64,000 bases of DNA from Octopus sinensis. Its lineage: Eukaryota. The notes beneath the pieces were generated by a model. The model was not told the origin of the DNA, ran no database searches, and worked only from the letters and a program-made list of their open reading frames with translations. This document shows positions 5,905 through 57,728 of this stretch, in pieces. The stretch lies in contig NC_043007.1 of the NCBI RefSeq assembly GCF_006345805.1, forward strand, positions 14,136,001 to 14,200,000, in the 5' to 3' direction. The position numbers and the translations under genes are program-made. Positions within the stretch are counted from its first letter, which is position 1. Each line of letters opens with the position of its first letter.

Positions 5905-6337
5905 GGATCTTTTCGGTTTGACCGGCAGTTTTTTCTTGCGGTGTCATATGAAATTGTCACCCATAATTATGACCCTAGTATCGATCTATTGCATTTCAAT
6001 CTGTTTTAGGTTTAGGGTTAGTTAGGATTAGGGTTAGGGGTGGGGGGAAGGGTATCTTTTTTTCTTCAGAAATGTAAATAAACCCAATCTGTTTCTTAAA
6101 CGAAGGACAAATTCATACGGCACAGAATGTTTTCACCTCAATAGACATCACTGATTGGTTGAAATTGCAGAAATTGAAGAAAAAAAACAACAAATATCTT
6201 ACAAACTATAGAATTTTCTCAATAAAGCCAAGAGAAAAAGATGTTTTTTAAACACATTCTACCAATATACGAAGTTTAAAAGTGTTTAGTTACGTGGATA
6301 TTATTTTTAAAAACAGCCGGTCAAACCGAAAAGATCC
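5905..6337. mobile_element. MITE with 29-bp TIRs and 8-bp TSD (hAT/P/Merlin-type TSD length), containing short TTAGGG-like repeats
   Basis: TIR ggatcttttcggtttgaccggcagttttt (5905-5933) pairs with aaaaacagccggtcaaaccgaaaagatcc (6309-6337). TSD taggtttg at 5897-5904 and 6338-6345. Confidence 0.9.
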
Positions 6338-6459: not shown

Positions 6460-7989
6460 ATGACTATGATGCGGAAAATTCTATTTAGCAGCATACTACT
6501 TCTGGCATTTTGGAACAAGAATAAAGTTGCTGAGGCTGACAACGTACTTCTACTGTCGTGGCCCCTCTTTAGTCATGTACAGGCTTTGGCTTCTATGGGC
6601 AGAGAACTGAGTAAATTTTCTCATACAAGTTACTTGCCCATTACCGAAGACCTCGTTGAGCATTTCAAGACATACAAAGGAGTAAAAATTATGCAAATGA
6701 AAAGTGACCCAAACCTTCTGACATTTACGGAAAAGGGAATGCAGCTACTTTATAAAGATTCAAATGTAACATTTAAGCAGCTTCAAGAAATCATGGACGT
6801 TATTTGTGATAACTTATTATTCGATGAAGATTGGTTTCAGTCATTGAAAGCTGTCAATGCCACAATCGCAGTGATAGATTATGTGTTTATGAGTAACTGT
6901 CTGGCTATCATACCATACAGATTATCTATTCCATATGTATTTCAAGGACTTAATTTTCAACATTATGCTATCAGTCGAACACCCTGGCTGCCGTCAACAT
7001 TTCCTCACCAGGGACTTATTAACTCAGATAAAATGAATTTCTACGACAGACTTGAAAACAGTTTCGTAACGATGTCTGCATATTTCAGACGACTAAATGG
7101 AGCTCCACAGAAAAGTGTTAAAACGTTTGCTCCACAAAAGCCTGATATAACTTTTACGAGTTTGATGCAGCAAGCTGATTTATATCTGATTGAGACAGAC
7201 ACAGTACTGGACTATCCAATTCCGACACTTCCTAATGTCGTATCCATCGGTGGAATTTCAACCCGACCAGCTTCTGCATTGAAAGGGGACTTACGTAAAT
7301 TTGTCGATGAATCTAATCATGGGATTATCGTTGTTTCGTTTGGAAGTTTTTTGGAAGAGTTACCAAAGGAAGTCATTGCAAAGATGGAACTGGCATTTCA
7401 AGAAATAAAATATAGCGTCGTTTGGAAACGGCCAGATGCAAAACAATTGGCACCAAACATCTTTGTCACAAAATGGTTGCCACAAAATGATCTTTTGGGT
7501 CATTCAAAAACAAAACTCTTCATTACACATTGTGGAAATAATGGTCAGTTTGAAGCTCTTTATCATGGAGTTCCAATGCTCGGATTCCCAGTATTTGCCG
7601 AACAATATCATAATGGACATCGAATACACATCAAGGGATATGGTATATCAATGGATTTGTTTAATTACAGTAAAGACGAACTTGTATCAAATATAAATGA
7701 ACTGATTGAGAATCCAAAATATAAAGCTAAAATAAAAATTGCAAGTGAAATATATCGGTCACAACCAGAACACCCAGCAGCTAAAGGTGCGAGGTATATA
7801 GACCACGTAATAAAATACGGTGGAGATCATTTAAGATCTTCTTGTCAAACTATGCCACTTTATCAATATTTCATGCTGGATATATATTTAGTAATATTTA
7901 TGATTTTCATTATTTTAACATTAATGATGAGTATTGTCATTCGAAAATGTTATTTACATTTTACAAAGAAAAATATTAAGCTTGATTAA
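6460..7989 (+). CDS. UDP-glycosyltransferase (UGT family, membrane-bound), type 1 paralog, intronless CDS, 509 aa
   Basis: Has an N-terminal signal peptide, catalytic-His region FSHVQ, the UGT signature WLPQNDLLGHSKTKLFITHCGNNGQFEALYHGVPMLGFPVFAEQ, a C-terminal TM helix and a Lys-rich tail. A candidate splice acceptor ccttcag lies just upstream (~6439). Confidence 0.95.
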   Translation: MTMMRKILFSSILLLAFWNKNKVAEADNVLLLSWPLFSHVQALASMGRELSKFSHTSYLPITEDLVEHFKTYKGVKIMQMKSDPNLLTFTEKGMQLLYKDSNVTFKQLQEIMDVICDNLLFDEDWFQSLKAVNATIAVIDYVFMSNCLAIIPYRLSIPYVFQGLNFQHYAISRTPWLPSTFPHQGLINSDKMNFYDRLENSFVTMSAYFRRLNGAPQKSVKTFAPQKPDITFTSLMQQADLYLIETDTVLDYPIPTLPNVVSIGGISTRPASALKGDLRKFVDESNHGIIVVSFGSFLEELPKEVIAKMELAFQEIKYSVVWKRPDAKQLAPNIFVTKWLPQNDLLGHSKTKLFITHCGNNGQFEALYHGVPMLGFPVFAEQYHNGHRIHIKGYGISMDLFNYSKDELVSNINELIENPKYKAKIKIASEIYRSQPEHPAAKGARYIDHVIKYGGDHLRSSCQTMPLYQYFMLDIYLVIFMIFIILTLMMSIVIRKCYLHFTKKNIKLD

Positions 7990-10292: not shown

Positions 10293-10299
10293 TATAGGC

Positions 10300-12800
10300 T
10301 CTCCGCCAACTCAATGACACCTCCTTCTACTCTCCTCTGTCCTCTAACCCCACACGTAGCTACCAACAGACGGTATCCTCTACTGTCCACGACCTCATCT
10401 CGTCCTCCTGCATCCCCCACACCGCATCCAACCTAATTGTGCGAACCCCACGTACCCCCACCATTTACTTCCTCCCCAAAATCCACAAACCCAACAACCC
10501 TGGCCGCCCCATCGTCTCCGCCTGTAACTGCCCCACGGAGCTCATCTTTAAATACCTCGACCGTGTCCTTGCCCCCCTAGTGGCATCTCTTCCCTCCCAC
10601 ATCCACGATACCAACCATGCTCTCCGGCTTTTCAACTCTTTCTCCTTTCCTCCCGGCTCCTCCAAAATCCTTTTTACTATGGGCATTCAGAGCCTCTATA
10701 CCGTTATCCCTCACCACGAAGGACTGCAGGCACTTCAACACTTTCTTGACCTCCGCTCCAACCCTGAGCCTAACACCTCCACACTCATTCGTCTGGCCGA
10801 ACTTGTCCTTACTCTTAACTGCTTCTCGTTCACGGGCGAGTTCTACCATCAGGTCTCGGGAGTGGCCATGGGAACGCGAATGGGCCCCAACTATGCGAAC
10901 CTGTTCGTTGGCTATGTTGAGGCCCAAATATTCTCTAATTTCACTGGTCCCACTCCTGAACTATATGGTCGTTACATTGACGACATTTTCGGTGCCACCT
11001 CACTCTCCCGTGAACATCTAGATTCCCTCCTCTCTTTCGTTCAATCTTTCCATCCAGCCCTCCACTTCACTTCCACTATCTCCTACACCTCTGTCTCCTT
11101 CCTCGACATTTCGGTTAGCATTCTTCACTCCACTCTTACCACCTCCATTCACTACAAACACACAGACTCACACTCATACCTCAACTTCTCTTCCTCCCAC
11201 CCAGAACACACCAAGCTTTCCATCCCCTATTCCCAATTCCTCCGTCTACGTAGGCTCTGTAGTGACGACCATGACTTTGAGACTCAGTCTTAACGTATGG
11301 CTCACCACTTCATCCTACCTGGATACCCCCTCACCACTATCCACACCGCCCTTGCCAGAGCACGTTCCGTGGACCGTGTATCTGCTCTCTCTCCCCGAAC
11401 CCGCCCTGTAGTCTCCCGCCTCCCTTTTCCCCTCACTTACCACCCCACGACCCTACCTCTCCAACGCACCATTCTTCGAGCTTTCCGTCATCTCCAGTCC
11501 GACCCGTCCACTTCACACCTCTTCCCTAACCGACCCCTCCCCTATTTCAAACGAGCCCATAACCTTCGAGACCTTTTGGTCCATAGCTCCTTCCCTGACC
11601 CTACCTCCCAACCTGGCTCGTTCCCCTGCTCCCGCCCACGTTGCCGCACTTGCCCTTACCTCTCCAACACCACTCTCCTCACTGGCACCCATCATCGACC
11701 CTATCGCATCATCAACTCCTTCACCTGCACCTCCAGCAATATTATCTAATTGCGTCTCTTGCTCTCTCTGCCATTCCCTGTACATCGGACAAACGGGACG
11801 CCGCTTGGCTGACCGGTTCGCGGAACACCTTCGTGATATCCGCCTTGCGAACGACACACCGGTCTCACGCCATTTCTGCTCCATCGGTCACTCCTTGCAA
11901 CACCTGTCTGTGTTCGGTTTGTCCTTACACAGAGGCCATCCGGATTCCCGTTTGCGCCGTGAACAGGAATTAATCTTCTCTCTTCGCTCTTATACGCCAT
12001 TTGGTCTCAACTCTCCCCCCTCCTCATCTAACCTCCCCCCGACCCCTACTTCTCTTCAGTCCTTCATCCTTTCACCCCTACTCCTCTTCCCTTCTTCCCT
12101 CTTTCTCCCTCCCTCCTTCTTCCCTCTTCCCCTTCCCTCTTTCTCTCTGCTCCCTCACTCCCCTTCTCTCTCTCTCCCCCTCTCCCTCTATCTTCCCTCC
12201 TCCTCTCCCCTCCTCTTCTCCTCCCCTTCCTTCTCCCCTCCTCTTCCTTCTCCCCCTTCCCCTTCCCCCTCCTCTTCTCCCCCCTCACCACCTCCCCTAT
12301 CCCCCCTTACCTCCCCCTCCTCTCCTCTCTCTACACTACACCATACGACTTTACACATCACATCATATATACATACACACGTCCAGACCTCTCATACGCA
12401 CTAATACTCTCTCATACACACACACACACACACACTCTTCTCATACACACACACACACACTCTTATGTTGGAGTGAGGTCATTCAACCCTATTATCTCCC
12501 CTAATTTCGCTCTTGCGTCTCATGTTTGATCTTTGACTTCTGTCCGAAATCAGATCGCCATGTTGATTCGCTAGCTTCTGCACGCATATTTTTTCTCTCC
12601 TTCTTTCTGTGTTTTTTCTCTGTGTATCTTTCTGTTGAAGAGCGTAGGCTCGAAACGTTAAAGACTTGTTTTATTTATATTTCCTGAGCGCCATACTAAT
12701 ACAATTGTTTGTTTGTATTCCACCTGCCTTCGTCTTTTGTTTATTTCCATAAAACTTCCTTCGTCTTTTGTCTATTTTCATAAAGCTTCCCGTTATATAT
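10300..12800 (+). mobile_element. 5'-truncated, inactivated Penelope-like retroelement (RT + zinc finger + GIY-YIG), probably Neptune-type
   Basis: RT motifs PKIHKP, GRPIVS, QVSGVAMG, RYIDD. Linker CSRPRCRTC. GIY-YIG SNII(Y)C...LYIGQTGRRLADRFAEH. Defects: in-frame stop at 11291-11293, +1 frameshift at ~11748, and TMGIQSLY in place of the expected TMDIQSLY catalytic Asp. Confidence 0.92.
12627..12664 (+). ncRNA. Minimal type I hammerhead-like motif in the PLE 3' region (CUGUUGA variant core)
   Basis: tcttt-CTGTTGA-a-gagc-gtag-gctc-GAAAC-GTT-aaaga gives a 5-bp helix I, a 4-bp helix II and a palindromic AACGTT helix III. Core position 6 is U rather than A. Confidence 0.65.
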
Positions 12801-12974
12801 ATGTATATATATATATACATACATACACACACATATATAAGAGAAAGCGGTGTCATTGAGACCCAAAGGTGTCAGGTAATGCTGAATAAGTGCTATAGAC
12901 AGACCATAGTTAAGTTCCAGATTCGGTAATATTGCAAATAAAGGGTTCAACGTTGGTTCTATGTCAGTGTATGT

Positions 12975-13133
12975 ATATAAGAATTTTTTGCATAATGAGA
13001 TAAAAAAACCCAAGGCTGTGTAGATATTAGAGCATTTTTAGATAGAAGGTTATAGATAGAGCATTTATCTAAAAATGCTCTAATATCTATACAGCCTTGG
13101 TTTTTTATCTCATTACGCAAAAAATTCTTATAT
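12975..13133. repeat. Near-perfect ~70-bp-arm inverted repeat with a ~21-nt spacer
   Basis: atataagaattttttgcataatgagata...agagcatttttagata pairs with tatctaaaaatgctct...tatctcattacgcaaaaaattcttatat. Confidence 0.9.
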
Positions 13134-13423
13134 GTATGAATATATTTATATAACAATTGCAGCGTGGAAGGTGTTTGTAAGCCATTTAAGAAACACACAA
13201 AAGCCGTTCGATTCACTTCAACATTTAAGTTTAATTTGTCAAAATATTTTCGTCGCTAAAATCCGCGACCTGTTCACTGAAGTGAATCAAACGGCTTTTG
13301 TGTGTTTCTTAATGATGACTACTCATGCTCTGACAGAAAATAATAGAATCAACTTCTGCAGAATTTGATTTCAGGTCACTGCTACCACCACCGCTGTTGT
13401 TGTCAATCCGGCAGCTGCTGTTG

Positions 13424-13675
13424 CTTCTTCTTCGTTTTCTTTTTCTTTTCTTTTTCTTTTTCTTTTCCTTTTCTTCTTCTTTTCCTTTTCTTCTTCTTTT
13501 CCTTTTCTTCTTTTTTTCTTTCTTCTTCTTCTTCTTCTTTTCCTTTTCTTCTTTTTTCCTTTTCTTCTTCTTTTCCTTTTCTTCTCTTCTTTTCTTCTTC
13601 TTTTTTTCTTCTTTTCCTTTTATTTTCTTTTTCTTCTTTTCCTTTTCTTTTCCTTTTCTTCTTCTTTCTTCTTTT
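13424..13675. repeat. Polypyrimidine (CTT/CTTTT)n tract
   Basis: Direct reading; source of the spurious K/E-rich and F/S-rich ORFs. Confidence 0.95.
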
Positions 13676-14253
13676 AAAATAACAAAAAAAACATTCACAA
13701 AAACAAGTTCCTGGTTATTCAGCACTTCTCTCTGCATATCTAAGCTGATTTACCTAATTTCAAATTTCAAGAGGCAGATAACGAACTGTAAATCAATGTC
13801 AGGTGTATCTTTTATCTTTTATCTTTTATTTATTTAAAGCATTTAACTGTGGCCATGCTGGGGCACCACCTTCTCTCTTCCTTTTCTTCTTCTTTTCCTT
13901 TTCTTTTCCTTTTCTTCTCCTTTTCCTTTTCTTTTCCTTTTCTTTTCCTTTTCTTCTTCTTCTTCTTCTTCTTCTTCTAATCAAGACTCATGTCATTACC
14001 CACAAAGAATAATCTCTAATTCGAGCCAACTCTAAGCTACGAAGAATGTGTGCTGCAACTTGAAGATCCACCCACCACATGCAATAGACTGGCAGTTGCA
14101 CATGCACAAAAGCTACGTTGTTATCCTCATTCCATAAATGGTGGCTTTTAACGGGTGGAGAGCTGAACCATCCTGGGGTACAGAGGATTCGCAATCTAGA
14201 CTAGGGTCTGAAAGTTTACTACACCATAGTGGGTTACACCATGGTTCCACCAT

Positions 14254-14694
14254 GGCGAGCTGGCAGAAACGTTAGCTCGCCGGGCGAAATGCGTAGCCGT
14301 ATTTCGTCTGTTGTTACGTTGTGAGTTCAAATTCCGCCGAGGTCGACTTTGCCGTTCATCCTTTCGGGGTCGATTAAATAAGTACCAGTTACGCACTGGG
14401 GTCGATATAGTCGACTTAATAACTATGTCTGTCCTTGTTTGTTCCCTCTGTGTTTAGCCCCTTGTGGGTAATAAAGAAATAGGTTCCTCTGCTTTGTAGC
14501 AGAGGTAGGAAGAAAGAGTGAGAGAAAGTTGTGGTGAAAGAGTACAACAGGGGTTGCCACCACCCCTGCCGGAGCCTCGTGGAGCTTAGGTGTTTTTGTT
14601 CAATAAACACTCACAATGCCCGGTCTGGGAATCGAAACTGCGTTCTTATGACCGCGAGTCCACTGCCCTAACCACTGGGCCATTGTGCCTCCAC
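14254..14694. mobile_element. Two adjacent SINEs: + strand 14254-14480 and - strand tRNA-headed 14490-14694
   Basis: The first has the ggcgagctggcagaaacg...aataaagaaata layout. The second reads gtggaggcacaatggcccagtggttaggg...gtttcgattccc on the reverse strand. Confidence 0.8.
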
Positions 14695-15681
14695 AGCTTT
14701 TGTTGCTGTTGTTGCTGTTCTTTTGTTGTTTGTTAAGTCCCAGTGCTACTCAAGTTATTCAGACATATGATCAAAATCACTCCAGCCTTGACCATCTCAA
14801 CATATGTCAGGACTATTGTTATCTAATGTGTTCTTTTTGAAAAGAAGATGGTGATGTAGTTTGAGGCGGTGGTGGTGGCGGCGGTGGCGATGGCGGCTTG
14901 GGGGTTGGTCGGGGTGGGGTGGGGGTGGTGGGGGTGGGGGGTGGTGTGGTGGTGGTGGTGGTGTGTGTGTGTGTGTGTGTGACTTTAAAATAACAAAAAA
15001 AAACATTCACAAAAACAAGTTCCCTGGTTATTCAGCACTTCTCTCTGCATATCTAAGCTGATTTACCTAATTTCAAATTTCAAGAGGCAGATAACGAACT
15101 GTAAATCAATGTCAGGTGTATCTTTTATCTTTTATCTTTTATTTATTAAAGCATTTAACTGTGGCCATGCTGGGGCACCACCTTGGAGAATTTAGTCTAA
15201 TCATTCAAACACAGTACCACACTGTACATACATTCTCAAAGCTGGTTCTTATTCTTTCAGTTTCATTTACTAGACACTAAATTGCAGAGGCTTAAACAAA
15301 CAAACACTAACTGTCAAGCAGAAGATAGGCAGGACAAACACAAACACACGCATATACACACACGCACGCACACGCGCATGCACACATACACATATATATG
15401 TATATAGCAGGTTTCCACACAGTTTCCACATATTAAACTCACTTACAAGGCATTAGTGAATCTGGGACCATAGCAGAAGACACTCACCCAAATTGCTGTG
15501 TAGTGGGATTGAACCCCAAATCACGTGGCTGCAAAACAAGTTCCTTAACCACACAGCTGTTCCTGCATCTCTCTACGTGGTAATAAACAATCAGTTTCTT
15601 ACTTGAAAACCAAGAGAAGGTAGGTAAGTTTAACTCTTTACTATTTAGATCAATCTGTCAAAGGCAATGTTCATTTATTCA

Positions 15682-18088
15682 CATCATCATCATCATCATC
15701 ATCATCGTTTAACGTCCACTTTCCATACTGGCATGGATTGGACAATTTGACTGAGGACTGGCAAGCCAGAAGGCTGCACCAGACCCCAATCTGATCTGGC
15801 AGAGTTTCTACAGCTGGATGTCCTTCCTAACGCCAACCACTCTGAGAGTGTAGCGGTTGCTTTTACGTGCCACCAGCACGAGAGCCAGTCAGGTGGTACT
15901 AGTGATGGCCATGCTCCAAACGGTAATTTTTATGTGCCACCTGCACAGGTGCCAGTCCAGTGGAACTGGCAACAACCTCACTCAAATGTTGTTTTTCCTG
16001 TGCCACCAGCATAAGTGCCAGTAAGGCGATGCTGGTAATGATCACGCTCGAATGGTGCTTTTTATGTGCCACTGGCATGGGGAGCTTTTAATGTTCCACT
16101 GGCTCAGGTGCCATCAGGAGGTGCTGTCATTGGCCACGTCAGCGAATTTGATTTTGATTGGGATTTCACTTGCCTCAACAGGTCTTCGCAAGCAACGCAT
16201 AAGTAGGCTGGTCATACTACCGGCATAAGCCATGATATTATGGTTTCATTTGGCTTGCCAGGTCTTCTCAAGCACAGCATATTTCCAAAGGTCTCGGTCA
16301 CTAGTCATTGCCTCAGTGAGGTTCAATGTTTGAAGGTCGTGCTTAACCACCTCATCCCAGGTCTTCCTGGATCTACCTCTTCCACAGATTCCCTCATCTG
16401 CTAGGTTGTGACACTTTTTCACGCATCTGTCCTCATCCATTCGCATTACATGACCATACCAGCGCAGTCATCTCTCTTGCACACCACATCTGATGTTTCT
16501 TAGGTCCAACTTTCCTCTCAAGTGTATGGACACTGGCATTACACATCCATCGAATCATACTGGCTTCATTCCTTGCAAGCTTACGCATGTCCTCAGCAGT
16601 CACGGCCCATGTTTCACTGCCATGTAGCATGGCTGTTTGTACACATGTGTCATACAGTCTACCCTTTACTCTGAGATAGAGGCCCTTTGTCACCAGCAGA
16701 GGTAGGAGCTTTCTGAACTTTGCCCAGGCTATTCTTATTCTAGCAGCTACACTTTCAGAGCACCCTCCCCCGCTACTGACTTGGTCACCTAGGTAACGGA
16801 AGCTATCAACTACTTCTAGTTTTTCTCCCTGGAATGTGGTGGAAGTTATTCTCTGTACATTTTCAGTGTTATTTATTGCTCCCGAGCATCTGCCACATAC
16901 AAAAACTATCTTCCCAGTTAGCCTTCCTTTGATACTGCTGCACCACTTATATGTCCATAGCTTACACTGGGTACATCTTATAGAGTTTCTACCCACGCAT
17001 TTTCTACAGATCGAGCAGGGCCATCTACCTGAAGGGATTTGTGGTTTGCCTGCCTTTCTACTTATTAGGACTTTGGTTTTTGCTAGATTGACTCTAAGGC
17101 CCTTCGATTCTAATCCTTGTTTCCACACTTGAAACTTCTCCTCTAGTTCTGATAGTGACTCAGCAATTAGAGCAAGGTCATCAGCATAGAGGAGCTCCCA
17201 GGGGCATCCTGTCTCGAATTCCTCCGTCATTGCCTGAAGGACTATGATAAATAGGAGGGGGCTGAGGACTGAACCTTGGTAGACCCCTACCTCTACCCTG
17301 AATTCTTCACTGTACTCGTTGCCAACCCTCACCTTACTGACAGCGTCCCTGTACATGGCTTGCACGGCTCTCACTAACCATTCACCTATCCCTAGTTTCC
17401 TCATTGACCACCAGATAAGGAATCGGGGGACCCTGTCAAAGGCTTTCTCCATGTCAACGAAAGCCAGGTACAGGGGCTTGTCTTTGGCTAGGTATTTCTC
17501 CTGCAAGGCGGCGAGCTGGCAGAAACGTTAGCATGCCGGGCGAAATGCCTAGCGGTATTTCTTCTGCCGTATGTTCTGAGTTCAAATTCCGCCGAGGTCG
17601 ACTTTCCCTTTCATCCTTTCGGGGGTCGATTAAATAATCGACTTAATACCTATGTCTGTCCTTGTTAGCCCCATCTATGTTTAGCCTCTGGTGGGTAATA
17701 AAGAAATAGGTATTTCTCCTGCAGCTGTCTTACCAGAAATATAGCATCAGTGGTACTTTTCCCTGGCACGAAACCAAACTGCATCTTATCCAATCTGACT
17801 CTCTCCCTAATTAGTTGGGCTATGACCCTCTCCATGACCTTCATTACCTGATCCAACAGCTTGATACCTCTGTAATTATTTGTATCTAAAGCATCACCTT
17901 TACCTTTGTAGCTGTTGACTGTTATGCTGCTACACCAGTCATTGGGTATGACTCCTTTGTGTATCACCTGGTTAACTATACGGGTGACTAGGCTATAGCC
18001 AACACTGCAAAATATTTTGAGCATCTCTGAAGTGATTCCTGATGGTCCGGGGACTTTCCCTGTCTTCATACTTTTAATTGCTTTATCT
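15682..18088 (-). mobile_element. 5'-truncated RTE-clade LINE (RT, Cys-rich finger insert, (GAT)n tail)
   Basis: MKTGKVPGP, NYRGIKLL, QFGFVPGKSTTDAIF, FVDMEKAFDRV, GVYQGSVLSPLLF, LLYADD, RGRSRKTW. The 3' UTR ends ggacgttaaacgatgatgat. Interrupted by a SINE at 17506-17706. Confidence 0.92.
17506..17706 (+). mobile_element. SINE inserted into the RTE ORF with a 17-bp TSD
   Basis: taggtatttctcctgca occurs at 17489-17505 and 17707-17723. The RT frame (RQLQEKYLAKDK) rejoins on removal. Confidence 0.92.
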
Positions 18089-18218
18089 TGTATATCTAGT
18101 CCATTGGCGCGCTGTTAGTTGGGGCATTTGAATTATAACGTCGGATGTAATCAATTGAACCACATGCGTATTTATCGTTATGGTAAAATCTGGCATGTGA
18201 TTGAGTGGATTTCATCCA

Positions 18219-18310
18219 GATAGTTTTGGCTGACGAGCTACAAGTGGATTTTTTTGTAAGTAAAATTACATTTAATTCATATAATAGCGAAACAATGTCC
18301 CAAAATAATC
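18219..18310 (+). ncRNA. Type I hammerhead ribozyme, copy 1 (helix III loop AAT)
   Basis: ttttgg-CTGACGA(18230)-gcta...tagc-GAAAC-aat-GTC(18297-18299)-ccaaaa. Confidence 0.8.
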
Positions 18311-18746
18311 TGTATTTTGTATTTTTTATTTGCCTGTCCGTGTGAGCTAACAATCGTACTGACTTTCATGGGAAACATGTATTTTTGTGGTTGAAACCTT
18401 TTGGATTAATGGTGCTAGAGTGAGCCATATAGTGACCTCTCTCTTATATTTATTTGTAAAAATATATAATATATTATAAAATATTATAATAATCAGGTTT
18501 CTCGGAAGCACTAGGCCACTTGGTGTTGAATAGATATACTATTAAATTAGTATCTAATTCTCTCACCCTTATTAATTAATTATAATTATGCTGCATTTAT
18601 TTCTAAATGCTAGTATTGTTTTCCGTGAAAGTTTGGCGCGCTGTTAGTTGGGGCATTTGAATTATAACGTCGGATGTAATCAATTGAACCACATGCGTTA
18701 TTTCGTTATGGTAAAATCTGGCATGTGATTGAGTGGATTTCATCCA

Positions 18747-18837
18747 GATAGTTTTGGCTGACGAGCTACAAGTGGATTTTTTTGTAAGTAAAATTACATT
18801 TAATTCATTAATAGCGAAACAATTGTCCCAAAAAATC
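18747..18837 (+). ncRNA. Type I hammerhead ribozyme, copy 2
   Basis: ttttgg-CTGACGA(18758)-gcta...tagc-GAAAC-aatt-GTC(18825-18827)-ccaaaa. Confidence 0.88.
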
Positions 18838-19276
18838 TGTATTTTTTTATTTTTTATTTGCCCTGTCCGTGTGAGCTAACAATCGTACTGACTTTCATGG
18901 GAAACATGTATTTTGGTGGTTGAAACCTTTTGATTACTGGTGCTAGAGTGAGCCATATAGTGACCACTCTCTTAATTTATTTTGTAAAAATATTATAATA
19001 TATTATAAAATATTATAATAATCCAGGTTTCTCGGAGCACTAGGCCACTTGGTGTTGAATAGATATACTATTAAATTAGTATCTAATTCTCTCACCCTTA
19101 TTAATTAATTATAATTATGCTGCATTTATTTCTAAATGCAGTATTTGTTTTCCGTGAAAGTTTGGCGCGCTGTTAGTTGGGGCATTTGAATTATAACGTC
19201 GGATGTAATCAATTGAACCACATGCGTATTTATCGTTATGGTAAAATCTGGCATGTGATTGAGTGGATTTCATCCA

Positions 19277-19368
19277 GATAGTTTTGGCTGACGAGCTACA
19301 AGTGGATTTTTTTGTAAGTAAAATTACATTTAATTCATTAATAGCGAAACAATTGTCCCAAAATAATC
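19277..19368 (+). ncRNA. Type I hammerhead ribozyme, copy 3
   Basis: ttttgg-CTGACGA(19288)-gcta...tagc-GAAAC-aatt-GTC(19355-19357)-ccaaaa. Confidence 0.88.
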
Positions 19369-19810
19369 TGTATTTTTGTTATTTTTTATTTGCCCTGTCC
19401 GTGTGAGCTAACAATCGTACGGACTTTCATGGGAAACATGTATTTTTTTCTTATGGTTGAAACCTTTTGGATTAACTGGTGCTAGAGTGAGCCATATAGT
19501 GACCACTCTCTTATATTTATTTTGTAAAAATATTATAATATATTAAAAATATTATAATAATCCAGGTTTCTCGGAGCACTAGGCCACTTGGTGTTGAATA
19601 GATATACTATTAAATTAGTATTAATTCTTCACCCTTATTAATTAATTATAATTATGCTGCATTTATTTCTAAATGCAGTATTGGTTCCGTGAAAAGTTGG
19701 CGCGCTGTTAGTTGGGGCATTTGAATATAACGTCGGATGTAATCAATTGAACCACATGCGTATTTATCGTTATGGTAAAATCTGGCATGTGATTGAGTGG
19801 ATTTCATCCA

Positions 19811-19901
19811 GATAGTTTTGGCTGACGAGCTACAGTGGATTTTTTTGTAAGTAAAATTACATTTAATTCATTAATAGCGAAACAATTGTCCCAAAATAAT
19901 C
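19811..19901 (+). ncRNA. Type I hammerhead ribozyme, copy 4
   Basis: ttttgg-CTGACGA(19822)-gcta...tagc-GAAAC-aatt-GTC(19888-19890)-ccaaaa. Confidence 0.88.
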
Positions 19902-20174
19902 TGTATTTTTGTTATTTTTTATTGCCCTGTCCGGTGAGCTAACAATCGTACTGACTTTCATGGGAAACATGTATTTTTGTGGTTGAACCTTTGGATTAAC
20001 TGGTGCTAGAGTGAGCCATATAGTGACCACTCTCTTATATTTATTTGTAAAAATATTATAATATATTATAAAATATTATAATAATCCAGGTTTCTCGGAG
20101 CACTAGGCCACTTGGTTGTTGAATAGATATACTATTAAATTAGTATCTAATTCTCTCACCCTTATTAATTAATT

Positions 20175-20183
20175 ATATACACA

Positions 20184-20217
<34 letters not shown>

Positions 20218-20254
20218 ACATATATATTATATATATAGATATATATATATATAT

Positions 20255-20299
<45 letters not shown>

Positions 20300-20350
20300 C
20301 ACATATATATATATAACATATATATATACATATATATATTATATATATAC

Positions 20351-20426
<76 letters not shown>

Positions 20427-20565
20427 CACATTATATATATATATTACATATATATATACATATATATATATTATAATATATATAATATATATATAATATA
20501 TATATACACATATATATTATATATAATATATATATATATATATAAATGTGTATATAGATAGATAT
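20175..20565. repeat. Imperfect (TA)n microsatellite
   Basis: Direct reading. Confidence 0.95.
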
Positions 20566-20714
20566 ACATCATATCATCATCATCGTTTAACGTCCGCTTT
20601 CCATGCTAGCATGGGTTGGACTGCTAGCATGGAAAGCAAAACCAAGGCAGGCTGAGTGGCTCAGGTCATTTAGAATATTTAATTAAAGTAAGGTGAATCA
20701 AAAATGGAGAAGTA

Positions 20715-23425: not shown

Positions 23426-24207
23426 CATCCTTCTTCCTTTTCTGAGCAAACAGTAACACTATACTTGTTCCACGTCCTCGCGTTGTGTTTTCATGTTTGG
23501 ATTAACTATATATATGTGTGTGTGTGTGTGTGTGTTTATAAATATATATATATATATTCATTTATATCAAACAGTGAGAATGAGTGATCAACACTGCATT
23601 GGTGGATAAATCTCTTTATTTGTGGGTTAACAGGGCTGCCAATGCTTTCACATAAAGAGATCTTCACAATTGTTCAAGCTTGCCACAAGAAAGTGTTGGT
23701 ACTTGTCTCCATTTTGGATAGGAATATTCCTATTCAAAATGGAGACAAGTAATATTTTTCTGCGGTACACAGGGAGCATATCTTGGAACCATTTATGAAA
23801 AGGTTAACATCGTCTATTAATGTCCAGTTTATATTTATATCAGTAACATTCTCTCTTAAAATTCAATTTTGCGTAATAAAGACATTCTGTTTCATCTTTA
23901 AATGTTACAGAAGAAGTATATATCTTGTCTTGCTTGTACTTTAAATATAGATTTTGGTGGTTTGTACTTTTTTGCATTTTACTGTATAGAACTGCATTTT
24001 TTTGTTAGCCAATTTCCTTTTAATGGATATAACTTTGATCTCTTGAAGTTGGATCTGTTTTCAATTGTGACTTTCTTTTATATATAGTTATTTAAATCTT
24101 GGATGCTGAGCATTTTGCTTCTTGTACAGCTATGGACATAATTGTCATTCAGTAAATAACATGATACTTGTTTCTTTGTTTAGGTCACAGAATATCCAGT
24201 GAGAAAG

Positions 24208-26597
24208 ATGAACACAATGAGAACATTCAAACTCAGCTTCTTCTATTTAAGTCTATTATCAATAAACCAACAAAGCAAAGCTGATAATATACTTTTCCTT
24301 TCAATGCCCGCTTTCAGTCATGTTCAAAACCAAATTCATACAGCGATGAAATTAAAGGCATATGGCCACACAAGTTACTTCTCATTACCACCTAAACTGA
24401 TAACTCATTTCAAGAATAAAGATGGTATTAAGTTCATTCCTATTAAAGAAGACCAAAATGTAACTTCATTTATTGAATTATCAATCAAATTCTTTTTAAG
24501 AACAGAGGAAATTAGCTGGCTTCAAATAAAACAGGTGACAAAAAATATGTGTGACAACTTCCTCTTAGACAGTGATTGGTATCATTCTATAAAAGAACTA
24601 AATGCCTCTTTGGCAATTGTAGATTCTGCTTTCTTTACTGAGTGTTTAGCTATTGTCCCATATAGATTATCAATTCCATTTGTATTTCAGGGTTTGTTTA
24701 CTGGACCACCTTTTTTGAGGAGAGTTCCTTGGAATCCAGCCGTGTTTCCAGTACTTGATTCTAAATATTCTGATAAAATGACATTTTTCCAAAAGCTTAA
24801 AAACACTATTGCAACATATGGCTTTTATATCACTGCCCCCTTGGCTCCCCCATCAAAGAGTGTCAAGGAATATGCCCCAGAAAAAAATGATATACCATTT
24901 GAAAGCGTTTTGCGAAAAGCTGTTATTCTTAACTGAGAGTGATCTGTTACTGAGTTATCCAAAACCCAGTCTCCCTTCTGAAGTATTTATTGGTGGAGTA
25001 GCAACTCATCCTGCATTGCCTCTACAAGGTGACATAAAGGAGTTTGTTGAAAGGTCTAAGCATGGAATCATCGTTGTTTCCTTTGGAAGTTACATAAGAG
25101 AGTTACCAAAAGAGCATATAGCGAAAATGGAGAAGGCTTTTAAAGAAATAAAGTATGATGTCATTTGGAAACGACCAGACTCAAAGCAATTAGCATCAAA
25201 CATCCTCATAAAACAATGGCTGCCACAAAATGATCTTTTGGGTCATCCAAAAACAAAACTCTTCATTACACATTGTGGAAATAATGGTCAGTTTGAAGCT
25301 CTTTATCATGGAGTTCCAAAATGTAAGCAGATTTATTGAGTTATCTATGAAATTCTTTTCAAGAAAGAAAGAAGGCAGCTGGCTTCAAATAAAACAGCTG
25401 ATACAAAAAATGTGTGACAACTTCCTCTTAGACAATGATTGGTATCATTCTATAAAAGAACTAAATGCCTCTTTAGCAATTGTAGATTCTGCTTTCTTTA
25501 GTCAGTGTTTAGCTATTGTCCCATATAGGCTATCAATTCCATTTCTATTTCAAGGTCTGGCTCTTGGACCACCTTCTTTAAGGAGAGTTCCTTGGAATCC
25601 AGCTGTGTTTCCACTTCTCAGTTTTGCACATTCTGATAAAATGACATTTTTCCAAAAGCTTAAAAACACTCTTTTAACATGCAGCTTCTTTATCTTTTTC
25701 CCCATGGTTTCCCCATCAAAGAGTGTCGAGGAATATGCCCCAGAAAAAAATGATATACCATTTGAAAGCGTTTTGCGAAAAGCTCAGTTATTCTTAACTG
25801 AGAGTGATCTGTTACTCAGTTATCCAAAACCCAGTCTCCCTTCTGAAGTATTTATTGGTGGAGTAGCAACTCATCCTGCATTGCCTCTACAAGGTGACAT
25901 AAAGGAGTTTGTTGAAAGGTCTAAGCATGGAATCATCGTTGTTTCCTTTGGAAGTTACATAAGAGAGTTACCAAAAGAGCATATAGCGAAAATGGAGAAG
26001 GCTTTTAAAGAAATAAAGTATGATGTCATTTGGAAACGACCAGACTCAAAGCAATTAGCATCAAACATCCTCATAAAACAATGGCTGCCACAAAATGATC
26101 TTTTGGGTCATCCAAAAACAAAACTCTTCATTACACATTGTGGAAATAATGGTCAGTTTGAAGCTCTTTATCATGGAGTTCCAATGCTCGGATTACCAGT
26201 ATTTGGAGATCAGTTTCAAAATGGCCATCAAATGCACGTAAAGGAATATGGAATTTCTATGGATATATATAATTACAATAAAGATGAACTTGTATCAAAC
26301 ATTAACGAACTGATTGAGAATTCAAAATATAAAACTAATATAAAACTTGCCAGTGAAATATTTCATTCCCGTCCAGAACACCCAGCAGAAAGGGCTGCTC
26401 GGTATGTAGACCATGTGATAAAGTATGGCGGAGATTATTTAAGATCACCCTCTCAAAATATGCCTCTTTACCAATTTCTCATGCTGGATATCTATGCTAC
26501 ATTTCTGGCTATAATCATAGCTGTTGTGTTGGTTGTTAAGTTTGTGGTTTTAAAATGTTATCGATGTTGTTTTGCGAAAAAGAAGAAAACGGAATAA
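24208..26597 (+). pseudogene. UGT type 2 locus with a 2-bp frameshift and an ~865-bp internal tandem duplication (chimera of two paralogs or alleles)
   Basis: ATG at 24208. aaagctgtta at ~24920 versus aaagctcagtta in paralogs. At 25316-25323 the sequence jumps from the signature motif (HGVP) back to the N-terminal QNVSRFIEL via a ccaa(a)atg microhomology, then runs to a normal end (AKKKKTE). Confidence 0.85.
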
Positions 26598-29120: not shown

Positions 29121-29161
<41 letters not shown>

Positions 29162-30568
29162 TTTTTTTACAGCTGGATGCTCTTCCTATTGCTAACCTTT
29201 ACCTGTTTTTCAAGTAAAGGAACTTATTGCCACACATCTTGAAAAGCACAAAGCAACTGGTTTGTTCAATGGTACCGCTGATTGTAGCTCATGATTCTCA
29301 GAGAGGGTCCACTGTAAACAGACGCAAAGTGCAACATGCACACATGCTCACTCACAAACATGTACACACACACACACATACTATGCATGTTTGCAGGTGT
29401 GTAACTAACTGGAACTCTGTCACATGACAAATGTCATTTTCCATAGCCTTGTGTTATGCATTGTTTCGTTCGTGATGGGGTGATAGACAACTCAATGAAG
29501 GCATTGTTATTGTTTTACGTGTTTATTTTGCTTAACCTGTTTTCGAACTGTCGATATACAGCGGAGTGATACACATTGTGCGTATCCGCCTTCGCAGTTC
29601 ATACTGTTTACTAACAAATAGTGCCGATAGCGGGGATGCACTCATACATACGCATACCTACGTATACACATAGATATGAATGTGTAACACCTTGAGTTGA
29701 CCCACACCTTGTGAGCGAAGTTGAATAGAGGACTGACACGCTTTCAACAATGGGCAGCCACAGCGTTCAGCCAGCTAAGAATTTGAACTCAAAGTGTAAA
29801 CAGCTGGAAGAAATACTGCAAGGCAGTTTTCCTGAAGCTCTAACGGTTTTGCTTAATAAAGATAATACTGATAATAGCTATTTATGATAATGCTATCAAT
29901 CGATGCATGCTGCAACATTTCTTGATCTTCCCTTTCTATCATAACAGAATGACTTTGCAATCTCCTCGATTCATGATTAAGCTCTTGTATGACTAAAATG
30001 TTGAAATAGGTTTGGGATCTTTTCGGTTTGACCGGCAGTTTTTCTTGCGGTGTCATATGAAATTGTCACCCATAATTATGACCCTAGTATCGATCTATTG
30101 CATTTCAATCTGTTTTAGGTTTAGGGTTAGTTAGGATTAGGGTTAGGGGTGGGGGGAAGGGTATCTTTTTTTCTTCAGAAATGTAAATAAACCCAATCTG
30201 TTTCTTAAACGAAGGACAAATTCATACGGCACAGAATGTTTTCACCTCAATAGACATCACTGATTGGTTGAAATTGCAGAAATTGAAGAAAAAAAACAAC
30301 AAATATCTTACAAACCATAGAATTTTCTCAATAAAGCCAAGAGAAAAAGATGTTTTTTAAACACATTCTACCAATATACGAAGTTTAAAAGTGTTTAGTT
30401 ACGTGGATATTATTTTTAAAAACAGCCGGTCAAACCGAAAAGATCCTAGGTTTGTTCCTTTCTCATTTATTTATATCGTTGTGGGTTTTTTTGTTTTTTT
30501 TCAATAATTTTTAGTAATAATAATTATTATGTTTTATAATACCTTCAGATATTTGAAGAAGTTGCAAA

Positions 30569-32095
30569 ATGACTATGATGCGGAAAATTCTATTTAGCAG
30601 CATACTATCTGGCATTTTGGAACAAGAATAAAGTTGCTGAGGCTGACAACGTACTTCTACTGTCGTGGCCCCTCTTTAGTCATGTACAGGCTTTGGCTTC
30701 TATGGGCAGAGAACTGAGTAAATTTTCTCATACAAGTTACTTGCCCATTACCGAAGACCTCGTTGAGCATTTCAAGACATACAAAGAGTAAAAATTATGC
30801 AAATGAAAAGTGACCCAAACCTTCTGACATTTACGGAAAAGGGAATGCAGCTACTTTATAAAGATTCAAATGTAACATTTAAGCAGCTTCAAGAAATCAT
30901 GGACGTTATTTGTGATAACTTATTATTCGATGAAGATTGGTTTCAGTCATTGAAAGCTGTCAATGCCACAATCGCAGTGATAGATTATGTGTTTATGAGT
31001 AACTGTCTGGCTATCATACCATACAGATTATCTATTCCATATGTATTTCAAGGACTTAATTTTCAACATTATGCTATCAGTCGAACACCCTGGCTGCCGT
31101 CAACATTTCCTCACCAGGGACTTATTAACTCAGATAAAATGAATTTCTACGACAGACTTGAAAACAGTTTCGTAACGATGTCTGCATATTTCAGACGACT
31201 AAATGGAGCTCCACAGAAAAGTGTTAAAACGTTTGCTCCACAAAAGCCTGATATAACTTTTACGAGTTTGATGCAGCAAGCTGATTTATATCTGATTGAG
31301 ACAGACACAGTACTGGACTATCCAATTCCGACACTTCCTAATGTCGTATCCATCGGTGGAATTTCAACCCGACCAGCTTCTGCATTGAAAGGGGACTTAC
31401 GTAAATTTGTCGATGAATCTAATCATGGGATTATCGTTGTTTCGTTTGGAAGTTTTTTGGAAGAGTTACCAAAGGAAGTCATTGCAAAGATGGAACTGGC
31501 ATTTCAAGAAATAAAATATAGCGTCGTTTGGAAACGGCCAGATGCAAAACAATTGGCACCAAACATCTTTGTCACAAAATGGTTGCCACAAAATGATCTT
31601 TTGGGTCATTCAAAAACAAAACTCTTCATTACACATTGTGGAAATAATGGTCAGTTTGAAGCTCTTTATCATGGAGTTCCAATGCTCGGATTCCCAGTAT
31701 TTGCCGAACAATATCATAATGGACATCGAATACACATCAAGGGATATGGTATATCAATGGATTTGTTTAATTACAGTAAAGACGAACTTGTATCAAATAT
31801 AAATGAACTGATTGAGAATCCAAAATATAAAGCTAAAATAAAAATTGCAAGTGAAATATATCGGTCACAACCAGAACACCCAGCAGCTAAAGGTGCGAGG
31901 TATATAGACCACGTAATAAAATACGGTGGAGATCATTTAAGATCTTCTTGTCAAACTATGCCACTTTATCAATATTTCATGCTGGATATATATTTAGTAA
32001 TATTTATGATTTTCATTATTTTAACATTAATGATGAGTATTGTCATTCGAAAATGTTATTTACATTTTACAAAGAAAAATATTAAGCTTGATTAA
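30569..32095 (+). pseudogene. Near-identical copy of the type 1 UGT with two small deletions (or sequencing errors)
   Basis: A 2-bp loss at ~30608 (catactatctgg vs catactacttctgg) gives MTMMRKILFSSILSGILEQE*. A 1-bp loss at ~30786 (aaagag vs aaaggag) follows. Downstream translation 30797-32095 is identical to copy A. Confidence 0.8.
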
Positions 32096-32608
32096 TTTCA
32101 TTAATATTGTATCTGGTTAATCATACAAAATATCCACCTGATAATATTTCATTAAAAAAAATGTTTAAGCCATTAATCTTTACAATTCTATACAAAATTT
32201 CAAACCATTACTTTTCAATAAAGAGATTTTTTTCCTTGGTAAAAAAATTTTGCAAATTTATTAGAAAGAATAAAATTGTCTTTCTTTTGTGTCTTTTCCA
32301 AAGTTTTCACAGCATAATACATTGGGACCAAACCCAGAATCTTATGGCTGGAAAACAAGCTTTTTACCACACAGCCATATGTGCATCTATACTCTTTACT
32401 CTTTTACTCTTTTACTTGTTTCAGTCACTTGACTGCGGCCATGCTGGAGCACCGCCTTTAATCGAGCAACTCGACCCTGGGACTTATTCTTTTGTAAGCC
32501 CAGTACTTATTCTATCGGTCCCTTTTGCCGAACCGCTAAGTAAGGGGGACGTAAACACACCAGCATCGGTTGTCAAGCAATGCTAGGGGGACAAACACAG
32601 ACACACAA

Positions 32609-32657
<49 letters not shown>

Positions 32658-34403
32658 TACGACAGGCTTCTTTCAGTTTCCGTCTACCAAATCCACTCAC
32701 AATGCATTGGTCGGCCCGGGGCTATAGCAGAAGACACTTGCCCTAGGTGCCACGCAGTGGGATTGAACCTGGAACCATGTGGTTGGTTAGCAAGCTACTT
32801 ACCACACAGTCACTCCTGCGCCTATGAATATTTAATTTTCAAAAAGCAAATATGTATTACCTTATAATATTATTAAATAAAACACATTTCTCATTTCGTT
32901 AAATTCACCCCATTACTACTACCTCATTTACTCCCTCTCTTCCTTCCTGTTTTCTATGATTCTTTCTCTCTCACCATGTTTAGCTTTCCTTTATTCATTG
33001 CCTGCCACCAAGCCCAGTACATGCACTCGTCCTGCACCTCTTCTACTATCTCTCTCTGTATCTCTATTATACTCTCTCTCCCTCTCTCTCTTCACTCTAT
33101 ACAATGTAAAGCATGACTGGAGAAATCAAGCAACCAGCATTTATATCAGCTAGACACCAGTGCTGGTGACACATAAAACCACCATTCAAGCGTAGCAGTT
33201 ACTAACATCGCCTGACTGACGTCCGTGTCGGTGACACGTAAAAAGCACCAACCGATCGTGGCCGTTTGCCAGCCCTCTCTGGCCCCTGTGCCGGAGGCAC
33301 GTAAAAAGCACCCACTACACTCATGGAGTGGTTGGCGTTAGGAAGGGCATCCAGCTGTAGAAACACTGCCAAATCAGACTGGAGCCTGGTGCAGCCTCCA
33401 TGGCTTACCAGACCCTGGTTGAACCGTCCAACCCATGCTAGCATGGAAAACGGACGTTAAATTAACAGAACCATTAGCATGTCAGGCAAAATTTCTTAAC
33501 AGTATTTCGTCCATCTTTATGGTCTGAGTTCAAATTCTGCCAAGGTCAACCTTATCTTTCATCATTTCAGTGTCATTAAAATACGTACCAGTTGAGCACT
33601 GAGGCCCATGTAATTGACTTACCTAACCCCCTAAATATTGCTGGCCTTGTGCTAAAATTTGAACCCAATACTATATAGAGAGGTGGAGGCGCATGGCTTA
33701 GTGGTTAGGGTGTCAGCATCATGATCGTAAGATTGTGGTTTCGATTCCTGGATCGGGCGACGCGTGTTCTTGAGCAAAACACTTCATTTCACGTTGCTCC
33801 AGTCCACTCAGCTGGCAAAAATGAGTAACGCTGTGATGGACTGGCGTCCCATCCAGCTGGGGATCACATACGCCATAGAAACCGGGAAACCGGGCTCACG
33901 AGCCTGGCTAGGCTTTAAAAGGGCGCATTTATTTTCATTATTATATAGAGATGAAAGGCAGTGAGCTAGCAGAATTGTTAAGCCTGTTGTGCAAAAATGC
34001 TAAGCAGCATTTCACCTATCTTTACATTCTGAGTTCAAATACTGCCAAGGTTGATTTTGTCCTTCATTCTTTTGGGGGCACGGGGCCTTAAAATAAGTAC
34101 CAGTTAAGCATTGGGGTCAAAGTAATTGTTCTCTTCCACAAAATTGCTGGCCGGGCCTTGTACTAAAATTTGTAAGCATTATTATATAGTGATGAGGTGC
34201 AAATAAGATGTGATTCCTTTAATGGTGTTAGCACAGGCATGGCTGTGTGGTAAGAAACTTGCTTCCCAACCACATGGTCCTGGGTTCAGTTCCACTGCGT
34301 GGAATCTAGGATGTATTCTACTATAGCCTCAGGCTGACCAAAGCTTTGTATGTGGATTTCATAGATGGAAACTGAAAGAAGCCTATTGTGTGTATATATA
34401 GGC

Positions 34404-55810: not shown

Positions 55811-56471
55811 TTTGGCATTTTATTATATGTAAGAAAATCCCTTCATCATAACCATCAACAGTAGCAGTCCTGGTAATAGTTGTAATGGTAGCAGTTGTAA
55901 TTGTGGTGTTGGTCGTGGTGGAGGTGGTAGTAGTAGGTATAGCAGGAGTGGTGATTATAGTAAGTGTAGTAGTTGTTAATATTAATGAATAACTGTGGTG
56001 GTGGTAGTAGTGGCAATTCTAATGGTAATAGTTGCAGCAGCAGCAGCAGTTGGAATAGTCTTAATTGTAATAGTAGTAGTAGTAGTAGTAATTGTGGTAA
56101 TGGTGGTGGTGGTGGTAGTAGTAGTAGTAGAAGCAGTAGTGTTGGTGGTGGTAATCTTAGCAGGGGCAGTGGGTTACGTTAACAGTGTTGGTGGTGGTTG
56201 CATTTGTAGTTGTAGTGACAGTGGAGGTAGTTGTTGGCCATGGGAATATGAACACAGGTTCAGGCTCATCCTGGAGGAGGGGGGGGCGTAGGGTGTGTGT
56301 GTGCTAAATCTGGTTTCAAGTTACAGGTTTCAAGTTTTGTTACAAGGCCAGCAATTTCAAACCCTTACCCTAACCTTCAAAACAAGATAACAAAACTGCA
56401 TGCATGAATGAATGACATTTGCAACGATCAGGTGATATCAAGACAAAGTAACACAGGTGTACACACATATG

Positions 56472-56541
<70 letters not shown>

Positions 56542-57076: not shown

Positions 57077-57131
<55 letters not shown>

Positions 57132-57196
57132 ATATATATATATATATAATATATATATATATATAATATATATGTATATATATATATATATATATG

Positions 57197-57233
<37 letters not shown>

Positions 57234-57570: not shown

Positions 57571-57658
<88 letters not shown>

Positions 57659-57670
57659 CATATATATATG

Positions 57671-57728
<58 letters not shown>

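Follow-up and report, generated by a model that had tools for sequence, protein, structure and literature searches.

What is a short head-to-tail array of non-coding units, each with a motif that resembles a self-cleaving hammerhead ribozyme, doing in an octopus chromosome: is it a satellite repeat, a relic, or one insertion of a mobile element? The question is raised by a retrozyme-like array in a 64-kb stretch of the Octopus sinensis genome (CM016869.1, about 14,136,001-14,200,000; hereafter the window). A first-pass annotation, made from the letters alone, had proposed that the array belongs to an octopod retrozyme family spread by rolling reverse transcription of a circular RNA. The species of the window agrees with the octopod origin, and the family is supported by a second locus, an empty site, arbitrary end phases, covariation and intact hammerheads in eight of eight copies; its spread would be by rolling reverse transcription. 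The array very probably represents a single insertion of a mobile, non-coding family of retrozymes of the class without long terminal repeats (non-LTR), present in Octopus (O. sinensis and O. vulgaris). Among animal retrozymes, the family appears to be the first from a cephalopod; the first-pass annotation knew of no described cephalopod family, and none is described in those of the papers searched that name octopuses or cephalopods alongside hammerhead ribozymes or retrozymes. Animal retrozymes, molluscan ones included, have already been described, and the octopus family introduces no new principle. It is distinct by its own sequence (as all such families are), by its 535-nt unit and by a helix II domain that defeats current covariance models. 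If the reading is true, hammerhead retrozymes extend to cephalopods. The chief interest of the family lies in its insertion junctions, which bear on how animal retrozymes are mobilised.

Array organisation and hammerhead motif

Array units carry one type I hammerhead each in head-to-tail order, and no LTR, primer-binding site, polypurine tract or open reading frame (ORF) was found in them. The lack of an ORF noted at first pass stands, the only candidates in the array being spurious minus-strand ORFs of at most 90 amino acids (aa) without homologues. A transfer RNA (tRNA)-like part was looked for in the unit and none was found, and exact look-up of the window ORFs that adjoin the array gave no record. 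An ORF for a reverse transcriptase (RT) and a GIY-YIG endonuclease between pseudo-LTRs (pLTRs) occurs neither in nor beside the unit; the nearby Penelope-like element (PLE) is a separate, older element. Two traits by which retrozymes are recognised are present: the GC content of 0.32 is below the ceiling of 45-50%, and PLEs co-occur with the array, as one copy in the window and its duplicate (Table 1). Successive array copies lie at intervals of 528, 530 and 534 bp and share 96-97% identity; Tandem Repeats Finder (TRF) missed them solely through its period limit of 500. Differences between the window units are almost all private single-base insertions or deletions (indels). These look like the signature of an unpolished long-read assembly, so that conservation among the four window copies is uninformative on constraint.

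On the plus strand, the unit reads CAGAU-A-GUUUUGG / CUGACGA / GCUA (43 nt) UAGC / GAAA / C-AAUU-G / UC and, after the cut, CCAAAAU-A-AUCUG. Helix I is open-ended and consists of 7 bp, an A.A mismatch and a further 4-5 bp; helix II is GCUA/UAGC plus its extension, with CUGACGA as the core; helix III, preceded by GAAA, has 2 bp (AC/GU) closed by AAUU and is followed by C17. The core pattern CTGACGAGCTA-N(30-55)-TAGCGAAAC has exactly four matches in the window, all on the plus strand (18230, 18758, 19288 and 19822), and none in 100 shuffles; a purpose-written type I hammerhead descriptor likewise finds only these four sites on both strands of the 64 kb. The first-pass annotation was thus right to see a complete type I hammerhead in each of four monomers, and its cut positions and unit lengths, which can be read straight from the sequence, are those of Table 1. 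Two of its details need adjustment. The AAUU loop that it gave to every monomer is found in units 2-4 and is AAU in unit 1. The insert that it put at about 45 nt is present, measures 43 nt and is an imperfect hairpin continuing helix II (a 2x2 internal loop, 8 bp, an internal loop, 5 bp and a hexaloop) rather than an unstructured loop.

The bases that define a hammerhead (CUGANGA, GAA, A15.1-U16.1 and an H, not G, at position 17) are present in the four window copies and in four further copies from a second O. sinensis locus and its O. vulgaris orthologue, described below. Three helices surround the core, with G10.1-C11.1 closing helix II. All conserved bases and all helices are intact in eight of the eight copies (three loci, two species) and the stems are identical; the only core change is at N7, a free position, which gives CUGACGA in the window and CUGAGGA at the second locus. 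The 103-nt hammerhead region folds with z = -5.2. For its helix III palindrome ACAAUUGU, the predicted energy is +2.4 kcal/mol when it folds as a hairpin and -6.4 kcal/mol when two molecules pair in an 8-bp duplex; in this model, helix III is stable solely between two molecules. These energies agree with the first-pass remark that a short palindromic helix III is typical of hammerheads that fold as dimers, and the GAAAC-NNNN-GUH palindromic design is common to the octopus hammerhead and to the active hammerheads of mussel (ACGCGCGU) and axolotl (ACACGUGU). The modelled geometry, in which 4 bp of helix II lead into a 2x2 internal loop and 7 bp of helix I into an A.A mismatch, is compatible with a loop 1-loop 2 contact.

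Table 1. Features of the array and of neighbouring retroelements, in window coordinates unless a chromosome record is named.
Feature	Position	Strand	Remarks
Retrozyme-like tandem array	18104..20177	+	3.9 head-to-tail units; consensus unit 535 nt; GC 0.32
Array on chromosome record	CM016869.1 (GCA_006345805.1), about 14,154,104-14,156,177		
Cut-to-cut unit 1	18300..18827	+	528 nt
Cut-to-cut unit 2	18828..19357	+	530 nt
Cut-to-cut unit 3	19358..19890	+	533 nt
Hammerhead 1	18217..18312	+	Predicted cut after 18299; loop III AAU (1 U short); extra A in helix II extension
Hammerhead 2	18745..18839	+	Predicted cut after 18827; 1 base missing in distal helix I 3' strand
Hammerhead 3	19275..19370	+	Predicted cut after 19357; consensus form
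Hammerhead 4	19809..19903	+	Predicted cut after 19890; 1 A missing in helix II internal loop
(TA)n microsatellite	20174..20566	.	393 bp; array 3' end runs into it
5'-truncated long interspersed nuclear element (LINE), RVT_1 domain	15680..18100	-	(ATG)n tail at 15680; short interspersed nuclear element (SINE) inserted at 17495-17716
Decayed PLE	10297..12795	+	RT 10439-11293; GIY-YIG endonuclease ~11750-12020
PLE duplicate copy	34401-36899		

Dispersed copies and an empty site

A second locus of the family was met while UDP-glucuronosyltransferase (UGT) loci were being sampled. It lies on the same O. sinensis chromosome, 35 Mb away (L004 7882-9055; hereafter locus 2), and consists of 1.36 units on the minus strand and 0.85 unit on the plus strand, arranged head to head with arms that are 99% complementary. 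Its flanks are non-homologous to those of the window locus, and locus 2 is therefore not a segmental duplicate of it. The O. vulgaris orthologue (L005), which comes from an independent assembly, carries this same inverted pair, with (TA)n on both sides; presence in both assemblies means that the structure is real and older than the vulgaris-sinensis split. In the O. bimaculoides orthologue (L006), the same flanks are contiguous with ~85 nt of (TATG)n between them, which represents an empty site. An O. bimaculoides locus that had been considered for comparison (L002) proved not to be orthologous.

The window locus has an O. vulgaris orthologue (L007) that holds no array. There, the PLE 3' end ...cataaagcttcccgtta directly abuts an uninterrupted (TA)n, which is followed by the right flank of the window, and window positions 12841-20173 (7.3 kb, LINE and array included) are absent. 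On this sequence comparison, the window array is lineage-specific. Dispersed copies of the family, at two loci with unrelated flanks, are present in some genomes and absent from others, as is expected of retrotransposition.

Locus 2 also contains a 176-bp segment, X, between the left (TA)n and the inverted retrozyme copy (L004 7347-7885, L005 3409-3584). At L004 of O. sinensis the arrangement is X-Y-X, equal to a 362-bp repeat in 1.5 units; a single X is present in O. vulgaris, and X is missing from O. bimaculoides. The X-Y-X segment contains no hammerhead core and has no Rfam match.

RNA structure and substitutions between lineages

Between the window-type and the locus-2-type consensus there are 14 fixed substitutions over 535 nt (2.6%), all 14 of which are confirmed in the O. 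vulgaris assembly. They include two compensatory pairs: in the hairpin GCUGCAUUUA...UAAAUGCAG, positions 300/317 change from G-C to A-U, and in the stem CACAUGC...GCAUGUG, positions 401/431 change from U-A to C-G. Random placement with the same substitution spectrum would give 0.088 such pairs (P(2 or more) = 0.0022). Further changes that preserve pairs through a wobble (G.U) number 4-5 on the plus strand versus 0-1 on the minus strand. Folded as a circle, unit 2 reaches -144.7 kcal/mol on the plus strand (z = -7.05, 66% of bases paired) and -108.6 kcal/mol on the minus strand (z = -4.27). The covariation supports the fold and shows RNA-level selection on the plus-strand structure.

Several other resemblances of the unit were rejected. 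Similarity to the SINE core (GTCGATGTAATCGACTT) was suspected and was not significant in a sensitive BLAST comparison. A weak match to U4 small nuclear RNA (snRNA) at 18859-19001 (19.4 bits, E = 0.15, gathering score 46) is judged to be chance; the promoter of newt satellite 2, a hammerhead repeat, is reportedly of snRNA type. The weak Rfam matches of the array and locus 2 as a whole (U4, small nucleolar RNA, microRNA) were set aside as chance or as an effect of the inverted repeat.

Chance matches and the possibility of an impaired ribozyme

Matches to the hammerhead consensus arise by chance in large databases, as Perreault et al. cautioned (PMC3088659), and the octopus genome is about 2.8 Gb in size (PMC13282606). 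With a strict descriptor (helix I of at least 6 bp, helix II of at least 4, helix III of at least 2, and a loop 2 of up to about 100 nt), dinucleotide shuffles of the whole window give 0.02 matches per 64-kb window on both strands, and a relaxed descriptor gives 0.2. At these rates, and in a genome of that size, the motif alone is not decisive. The array could then be an ordinary satellite or a local tandem duplication in which a hammerhead-like string occurs by chance, with no ribozyme, RNA intermediate or mobility. Besides the caution just cited, this explanation can draw on the hundreds of chance matches that the strict rate implies genome-wide and on the failure of covariance models to recognise the motif. 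For single units, the strict rate per shuffled monomer is 1.2e-4 (relaxed, 5.8e-4), and the descriptor combined with a palindromic helix III is matched in 0 of 60,000 shuffled monomers. The second locus with its unrelated flanks, the O. bimaculoides empty site at locus 2, the copy ends at arbitrary phases and the compensatory and strand-specific wobble substitutions also speak against a satellite, which we consider very improbable.

Several results speak against the retrozyme reading. The search with Infernal and the Rfam hammerhead models that the first-pass annotation proposed as a check found nothing: there is no match at the gathering score in the window, and no hammerhead at E up to 10 in 18000-20300 or in L004 7300-9100. 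A covariance model built from four experimentally active retrozyme hammerheads (coral, mussel and two from axolotl; supplement of PMC7229834) and run with filters off did not recover the array sites, and when forced onto one site it aligned only GAAACAAUUGU (helix III), at 5 bits. The 43-nt helix II extension is atypical, and no described natural precedent for it was found. In nearest-neighbour calculations, an alternative fold that pairs GACGA with UUGUC beats the active fold by 5.6 kcal/mol (for hammerhead 3, -19.4 kcal/mol for the active fold versus a minimum free energy (MFE) of -25.0 kcal/mol). Hammerhead stems show no covariation, and since the lineages have diverged by only 2.6%, intactness of the hammerhead is not significant in itself. 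Other results concern the family more widely. The unit has no detectable similarity to the decayed PLE copy in the window, pseudo-ORFs from all array frames have no match in a collection of 5.8 billion proteins, and a pattern scan of metagenomes returned no further copies of the array family. The O. sinensis assembly is noisy, and because O. vulgaris lacks the whole 7.3 kb at the window locus, the insertion of the array itself is not isolated there. Failure of the models is likely due to the 43-nt insertion in helix II; a census that relies on such models can overlook a hammerhead whose helix II is long, so that the family may be under-counted.

These results could also be read as the record of a mobile structured-RNA element whose hammerhead is a relic, or is too impaired to cut, and whose tandem copies arise through multimeric read-through copying or host nucleases. 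The atypical helix II extension and the failing models would fit such an element, as would an active fold that is less stable than its competitor and a helix III that is unstable as a hairpin; the mussel hammerhead, whose helix III is of the same design, cuts only slowly, at about 0.1 per min (PMC7229834). A relic is harder to reconcile with eight of eight copies that keep every conserved core base and all three helices, and with the sole core change: N7 is free to vary, and C to G at this position breaks the competing GACGA/UUGUC pairing that the MFE fold favours. Adjacent copy ends at locus 2 (positions 161 and 162, below) also favour a circular template or one of an exact multiple of the unit. 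Hammerheads in general tolerate extensions of helix II, and engineered allosteric hammerheads carry aptamers there. We regard a relic or impaired ribozyme as improbable.

Insertion junctions and the mobilising enzyme

In consensus coordinates, in which position 1 is the first base after the cut, copies of the family have 5' ends at 340, 239 and 162 and 3' ends at 291, 161 and 350, so there are no fixed ends. The window array starts at 340 and ends at 291, out of phase with the cut as the first-pass annotation had observed, and its 3' junction reads ...ttaattaattata followed directly by tacacaaatatata. The sense-strand 3' ends at 291 and 161 both lie in AU-rich tracts and, at each of the two loci, pass straight into (TA)n. 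Position 161 is the last of the direct copy at locus 2 and position 162 the first of the inverted copy; these nucleotides are adjacent, yet the two copies overlap by ~450 nt. The adjacency suggests two RT events on one template, circular or an exact multiple of the unit in length, with the second event stopping where the first began. Since the insertions are in microsatellites, neither locus allows a clear target-site duplication to be recognised. The GC-rich palindrome GGCGCGC is the site of both the 5' end of the window array (340; e.g. 18104-18114) and the 3' end of the inverted copy at locus 2 (350; L004 7882-7893); this shared end point could be a coincidence, or a preferred stop or priming point.

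A cycle of the kind described for animal retrozymes (PMC7229834, PMC7761336) would connect these observations. The array, or a master copy elsewhere, would be transcribed on the plus strand, and each unit, with the motif and energetics given above, would fold into a type I hammerhead and cut after GUC, ahead of the next C. Two hammerheads would probably join at the 8-nt palindrome and cleave together as a double hammerhead, as is expected from the weak helix III and from a design like that of axolotl, in which dimers are needed for efficient cutting. The linear RNA of ~535 nt released in this way, whose structure is under selection, would have its ends held together by helix I, and a host RtcB-type (tRNA) ligase could close it into a heavily base-paired circle. 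An RT would then go round the circle more than once, starting from a nicked (TA)n annealed as primer to the AU-rich RNA tracts; such copying would yield tandem copies with arbitrary end phases, which is what the junctions, the (TA)n targets and the empty site display. Integration of the copied product by a mobilising enzyme would complete the cycle.

PLEs are favoured as the source of that enzyme: the insertions have a (TA)n target and are arranged in tandem and inverted form, a PLE in O. vulgaris abuts the very (TA)n tract that holds the array in O. sinensis, and a preprint derives vertebrate retrozymes from PLE pLTRs (10.64898/2026.07.22.740005). The lack of detectable similarity between the unit and the one PLE copy compared, that of the window, counts against them. 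PLEs are reported to prefer microsatellite and (TA)n targets and to produce tandem and inverted insertions, including partial tandems with an inverted truncated copy (PMC8557442), and they have been annotated in O. vulgaris (PMC13282606). In its fullest form, the argument would be that the junctions record retrozyme integration by (TA)n-primed reverse transcription on circular RNA, that the second priming event at locus 2 ran to the start of the first, that this, combined with the PLE 3' end on the same (TA)n tract, is direct genomic evidence of mobilisation by PLE RT and endonuclease, and that a hammerhead with a 43-nt helix II extension, which current models fail to see, is functional. We treat that combined claim as tentative and, taken as a whole, somewhat doubtful. 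The octopus loci provide clean junctions, with (TA)n, an empty site and a twin inverted copy, which make the question of the mobilising enzyme testable.

Mobilisation by the RT of a LINE is the competing possibility, and the window array and the truncated LINE might even be a single template-switch chimera. Only 4 bp, and no (TA)n, separate the truncated 5' end of that LINE from the first base of the array, and on the other side the (TA)n tract is continuous with the (CAT)n tail, at 20567, of another retroelement of LINE or SINE type. Octopus annotated repeats include LINEs of the Dong-R4, CR1, L1-Tx1 and RTE groups (PMC13282606). A template switch would, however, place both parts in the same sense, whereas the hammerhead strand is antisense to the LINE. 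There is no LINE beside locus 2, and the two loci share the (TA)n junction and the tandem or inverted architecture that have been reported for PLEs (PMC8557442). A LINE is consequently an unlikely mobiliser, yet one to be taken seriously, and PLEs remain the favoured candidates.

Relation to known hammerhead repeats

The closest comparison among molluscs is the retrozyme of Mytilus galloprovincialis (Mg353; Cervera and de la Pena 2020, PMC7229834). Both families consist of AT-rich tandem repeats that are non-coding and have a single type I hammerhead in every unit, both give heavily self-paired RNA, and both host genomes contain PLEs. The helix III design is also alike, with GAAAC, a palindromic tetraloop and GUC (ACGCGCGU in mussel, ACAAUUGU in octopus). 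The families share no sequence similarity, and the mussel unit is 350-390 nt long compared with 535 nt in octopus. Loop 2 separates them further, with a 5-nt loop on helix II in mussel and a structured 43-nt extension in octopus. Circles and cleavage have been demonstrated for the mussel element, whereas the octopus element is known here from its sequence.

Satellite 2 of newt and axolotl (HHR_Amex1/2) resembles the octopus array in its tandem units, very weak helix III and palindromic loop. Its hammerheads cut efficiently only as dimers, and the octopus energetics predict the same behaviour. It differs in being a vertebrate repeat that is GC-richer, with units of 330-350 nt in up to about 1e5 copies, and in having a canonical short loop 2 with conserved loop 1-loop 2 contacts. 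The pDo500 repeat of Dolichopoda cave crickets is closer in size, with a ~500-bp unit and one hammerhead, for which single and double hammerhead modes have been proposed and for which compensatory changes have also been taken as evidence of constraint. In contrast to the octopus family, pDo500 is a classical satellite in long arrays, its hammerhead of 49-68 nt lacks a helix II extension, and the work on it includes no insertion-site evidence for mobility.

PLEs and the hammerheads of their pLTRs share with the octopus family insertion into microsatellites or (TA)n and the formation of partial tandems with an adjacent inverted, 5'-truncated copy; PLE pLTRs carry type I hammerheads that are thought to act as dimers. 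The octopus unit differs in having no RT or GIY-YIG ORF and no detectable similarity to the window PLE copy. PLE hammerheads are also minimal, whereas that of octopus has a real, short helix III and long helices I and II. The preprint that derives animal (vertebrate) retrozymes from PLE pLTRs reports units of 51-972 bp and at most 7 units in 75% of families (10.64898/2026.07.22.740005). The octopus unit size and copy number fit this range, and 535 nt exceeds the 150-450 bp given earlier (PMC7229834).

Neighbouring elements in the window

The window PLE lies ~6 kb upstream of the array; beyond its 3' end ...cataaagcttcccgtta at 12795, a short (TA)-rich tract occupies 12796-12840. Comparison of L007 5660-5690 with window positions 11811-12765 shows that the O. 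vulgaris PLE lacks ~950 bp, namely the end of the GIY-YIG domain and a CT-rich 3' region. A hammerhead-like remnant, CTGTTGAAGAGCGTAGGCTCGAAAC, is found at 12632-12656 and 36736-36760, ~140 nt before the PLE 3' end, which is where PLE hammerheads are expected; three extra bases break its core, and it departs from the consensus.

Two large direct duplications lie in the window: 5055-17494 matches 29159-41579 at 99.4%, and 41680-47327 matches 54476-60104 at 98.1%. The first stops exactly at the SINE inserted in the LINE, just before the array, and the duplicated segment is present once in the O. vulgaris orthologue. Either these duplications arose very recently or the O. sinensis assembly has duplicated the sequence falsely. 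A short, interstitial stretch of degenerate telomere-like repeats (CCCTAA variants) lies in the duplicated segment, at 5972-6073 and 30081-30182.

An intronless UGT cluster runs through the window (6460-7989, 24199-26597, 30797-32095, 47403-48938 and 60282-61817), and its ORFs match the annotation of O. sinensis. In the NCBI UGT models, N-terminal parts from one copy are joined to the C-terminal part of a different copy (P0002). One 509-aa UGT model has its start upstream of 20797 and its end at 26597 and may thus extend across the array, on the same strand. SINE-like tandem units with periods of 156 and 184 occupy 1331-2125, and the same SINE recurs at scattered places in the window, one of these copies being the insertion in the LINE. 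The 7.3 kb absent from O. vulgaris also includes a near-perfect palindrome of ~130 bp at 13000-13130 (...ccaaggctgtgtagatattagagcattttt / aaaaatgctctaatatctatacagccttgg...), which is possibly an element resembling a miniature inverted-repeat transposable element (MITE).

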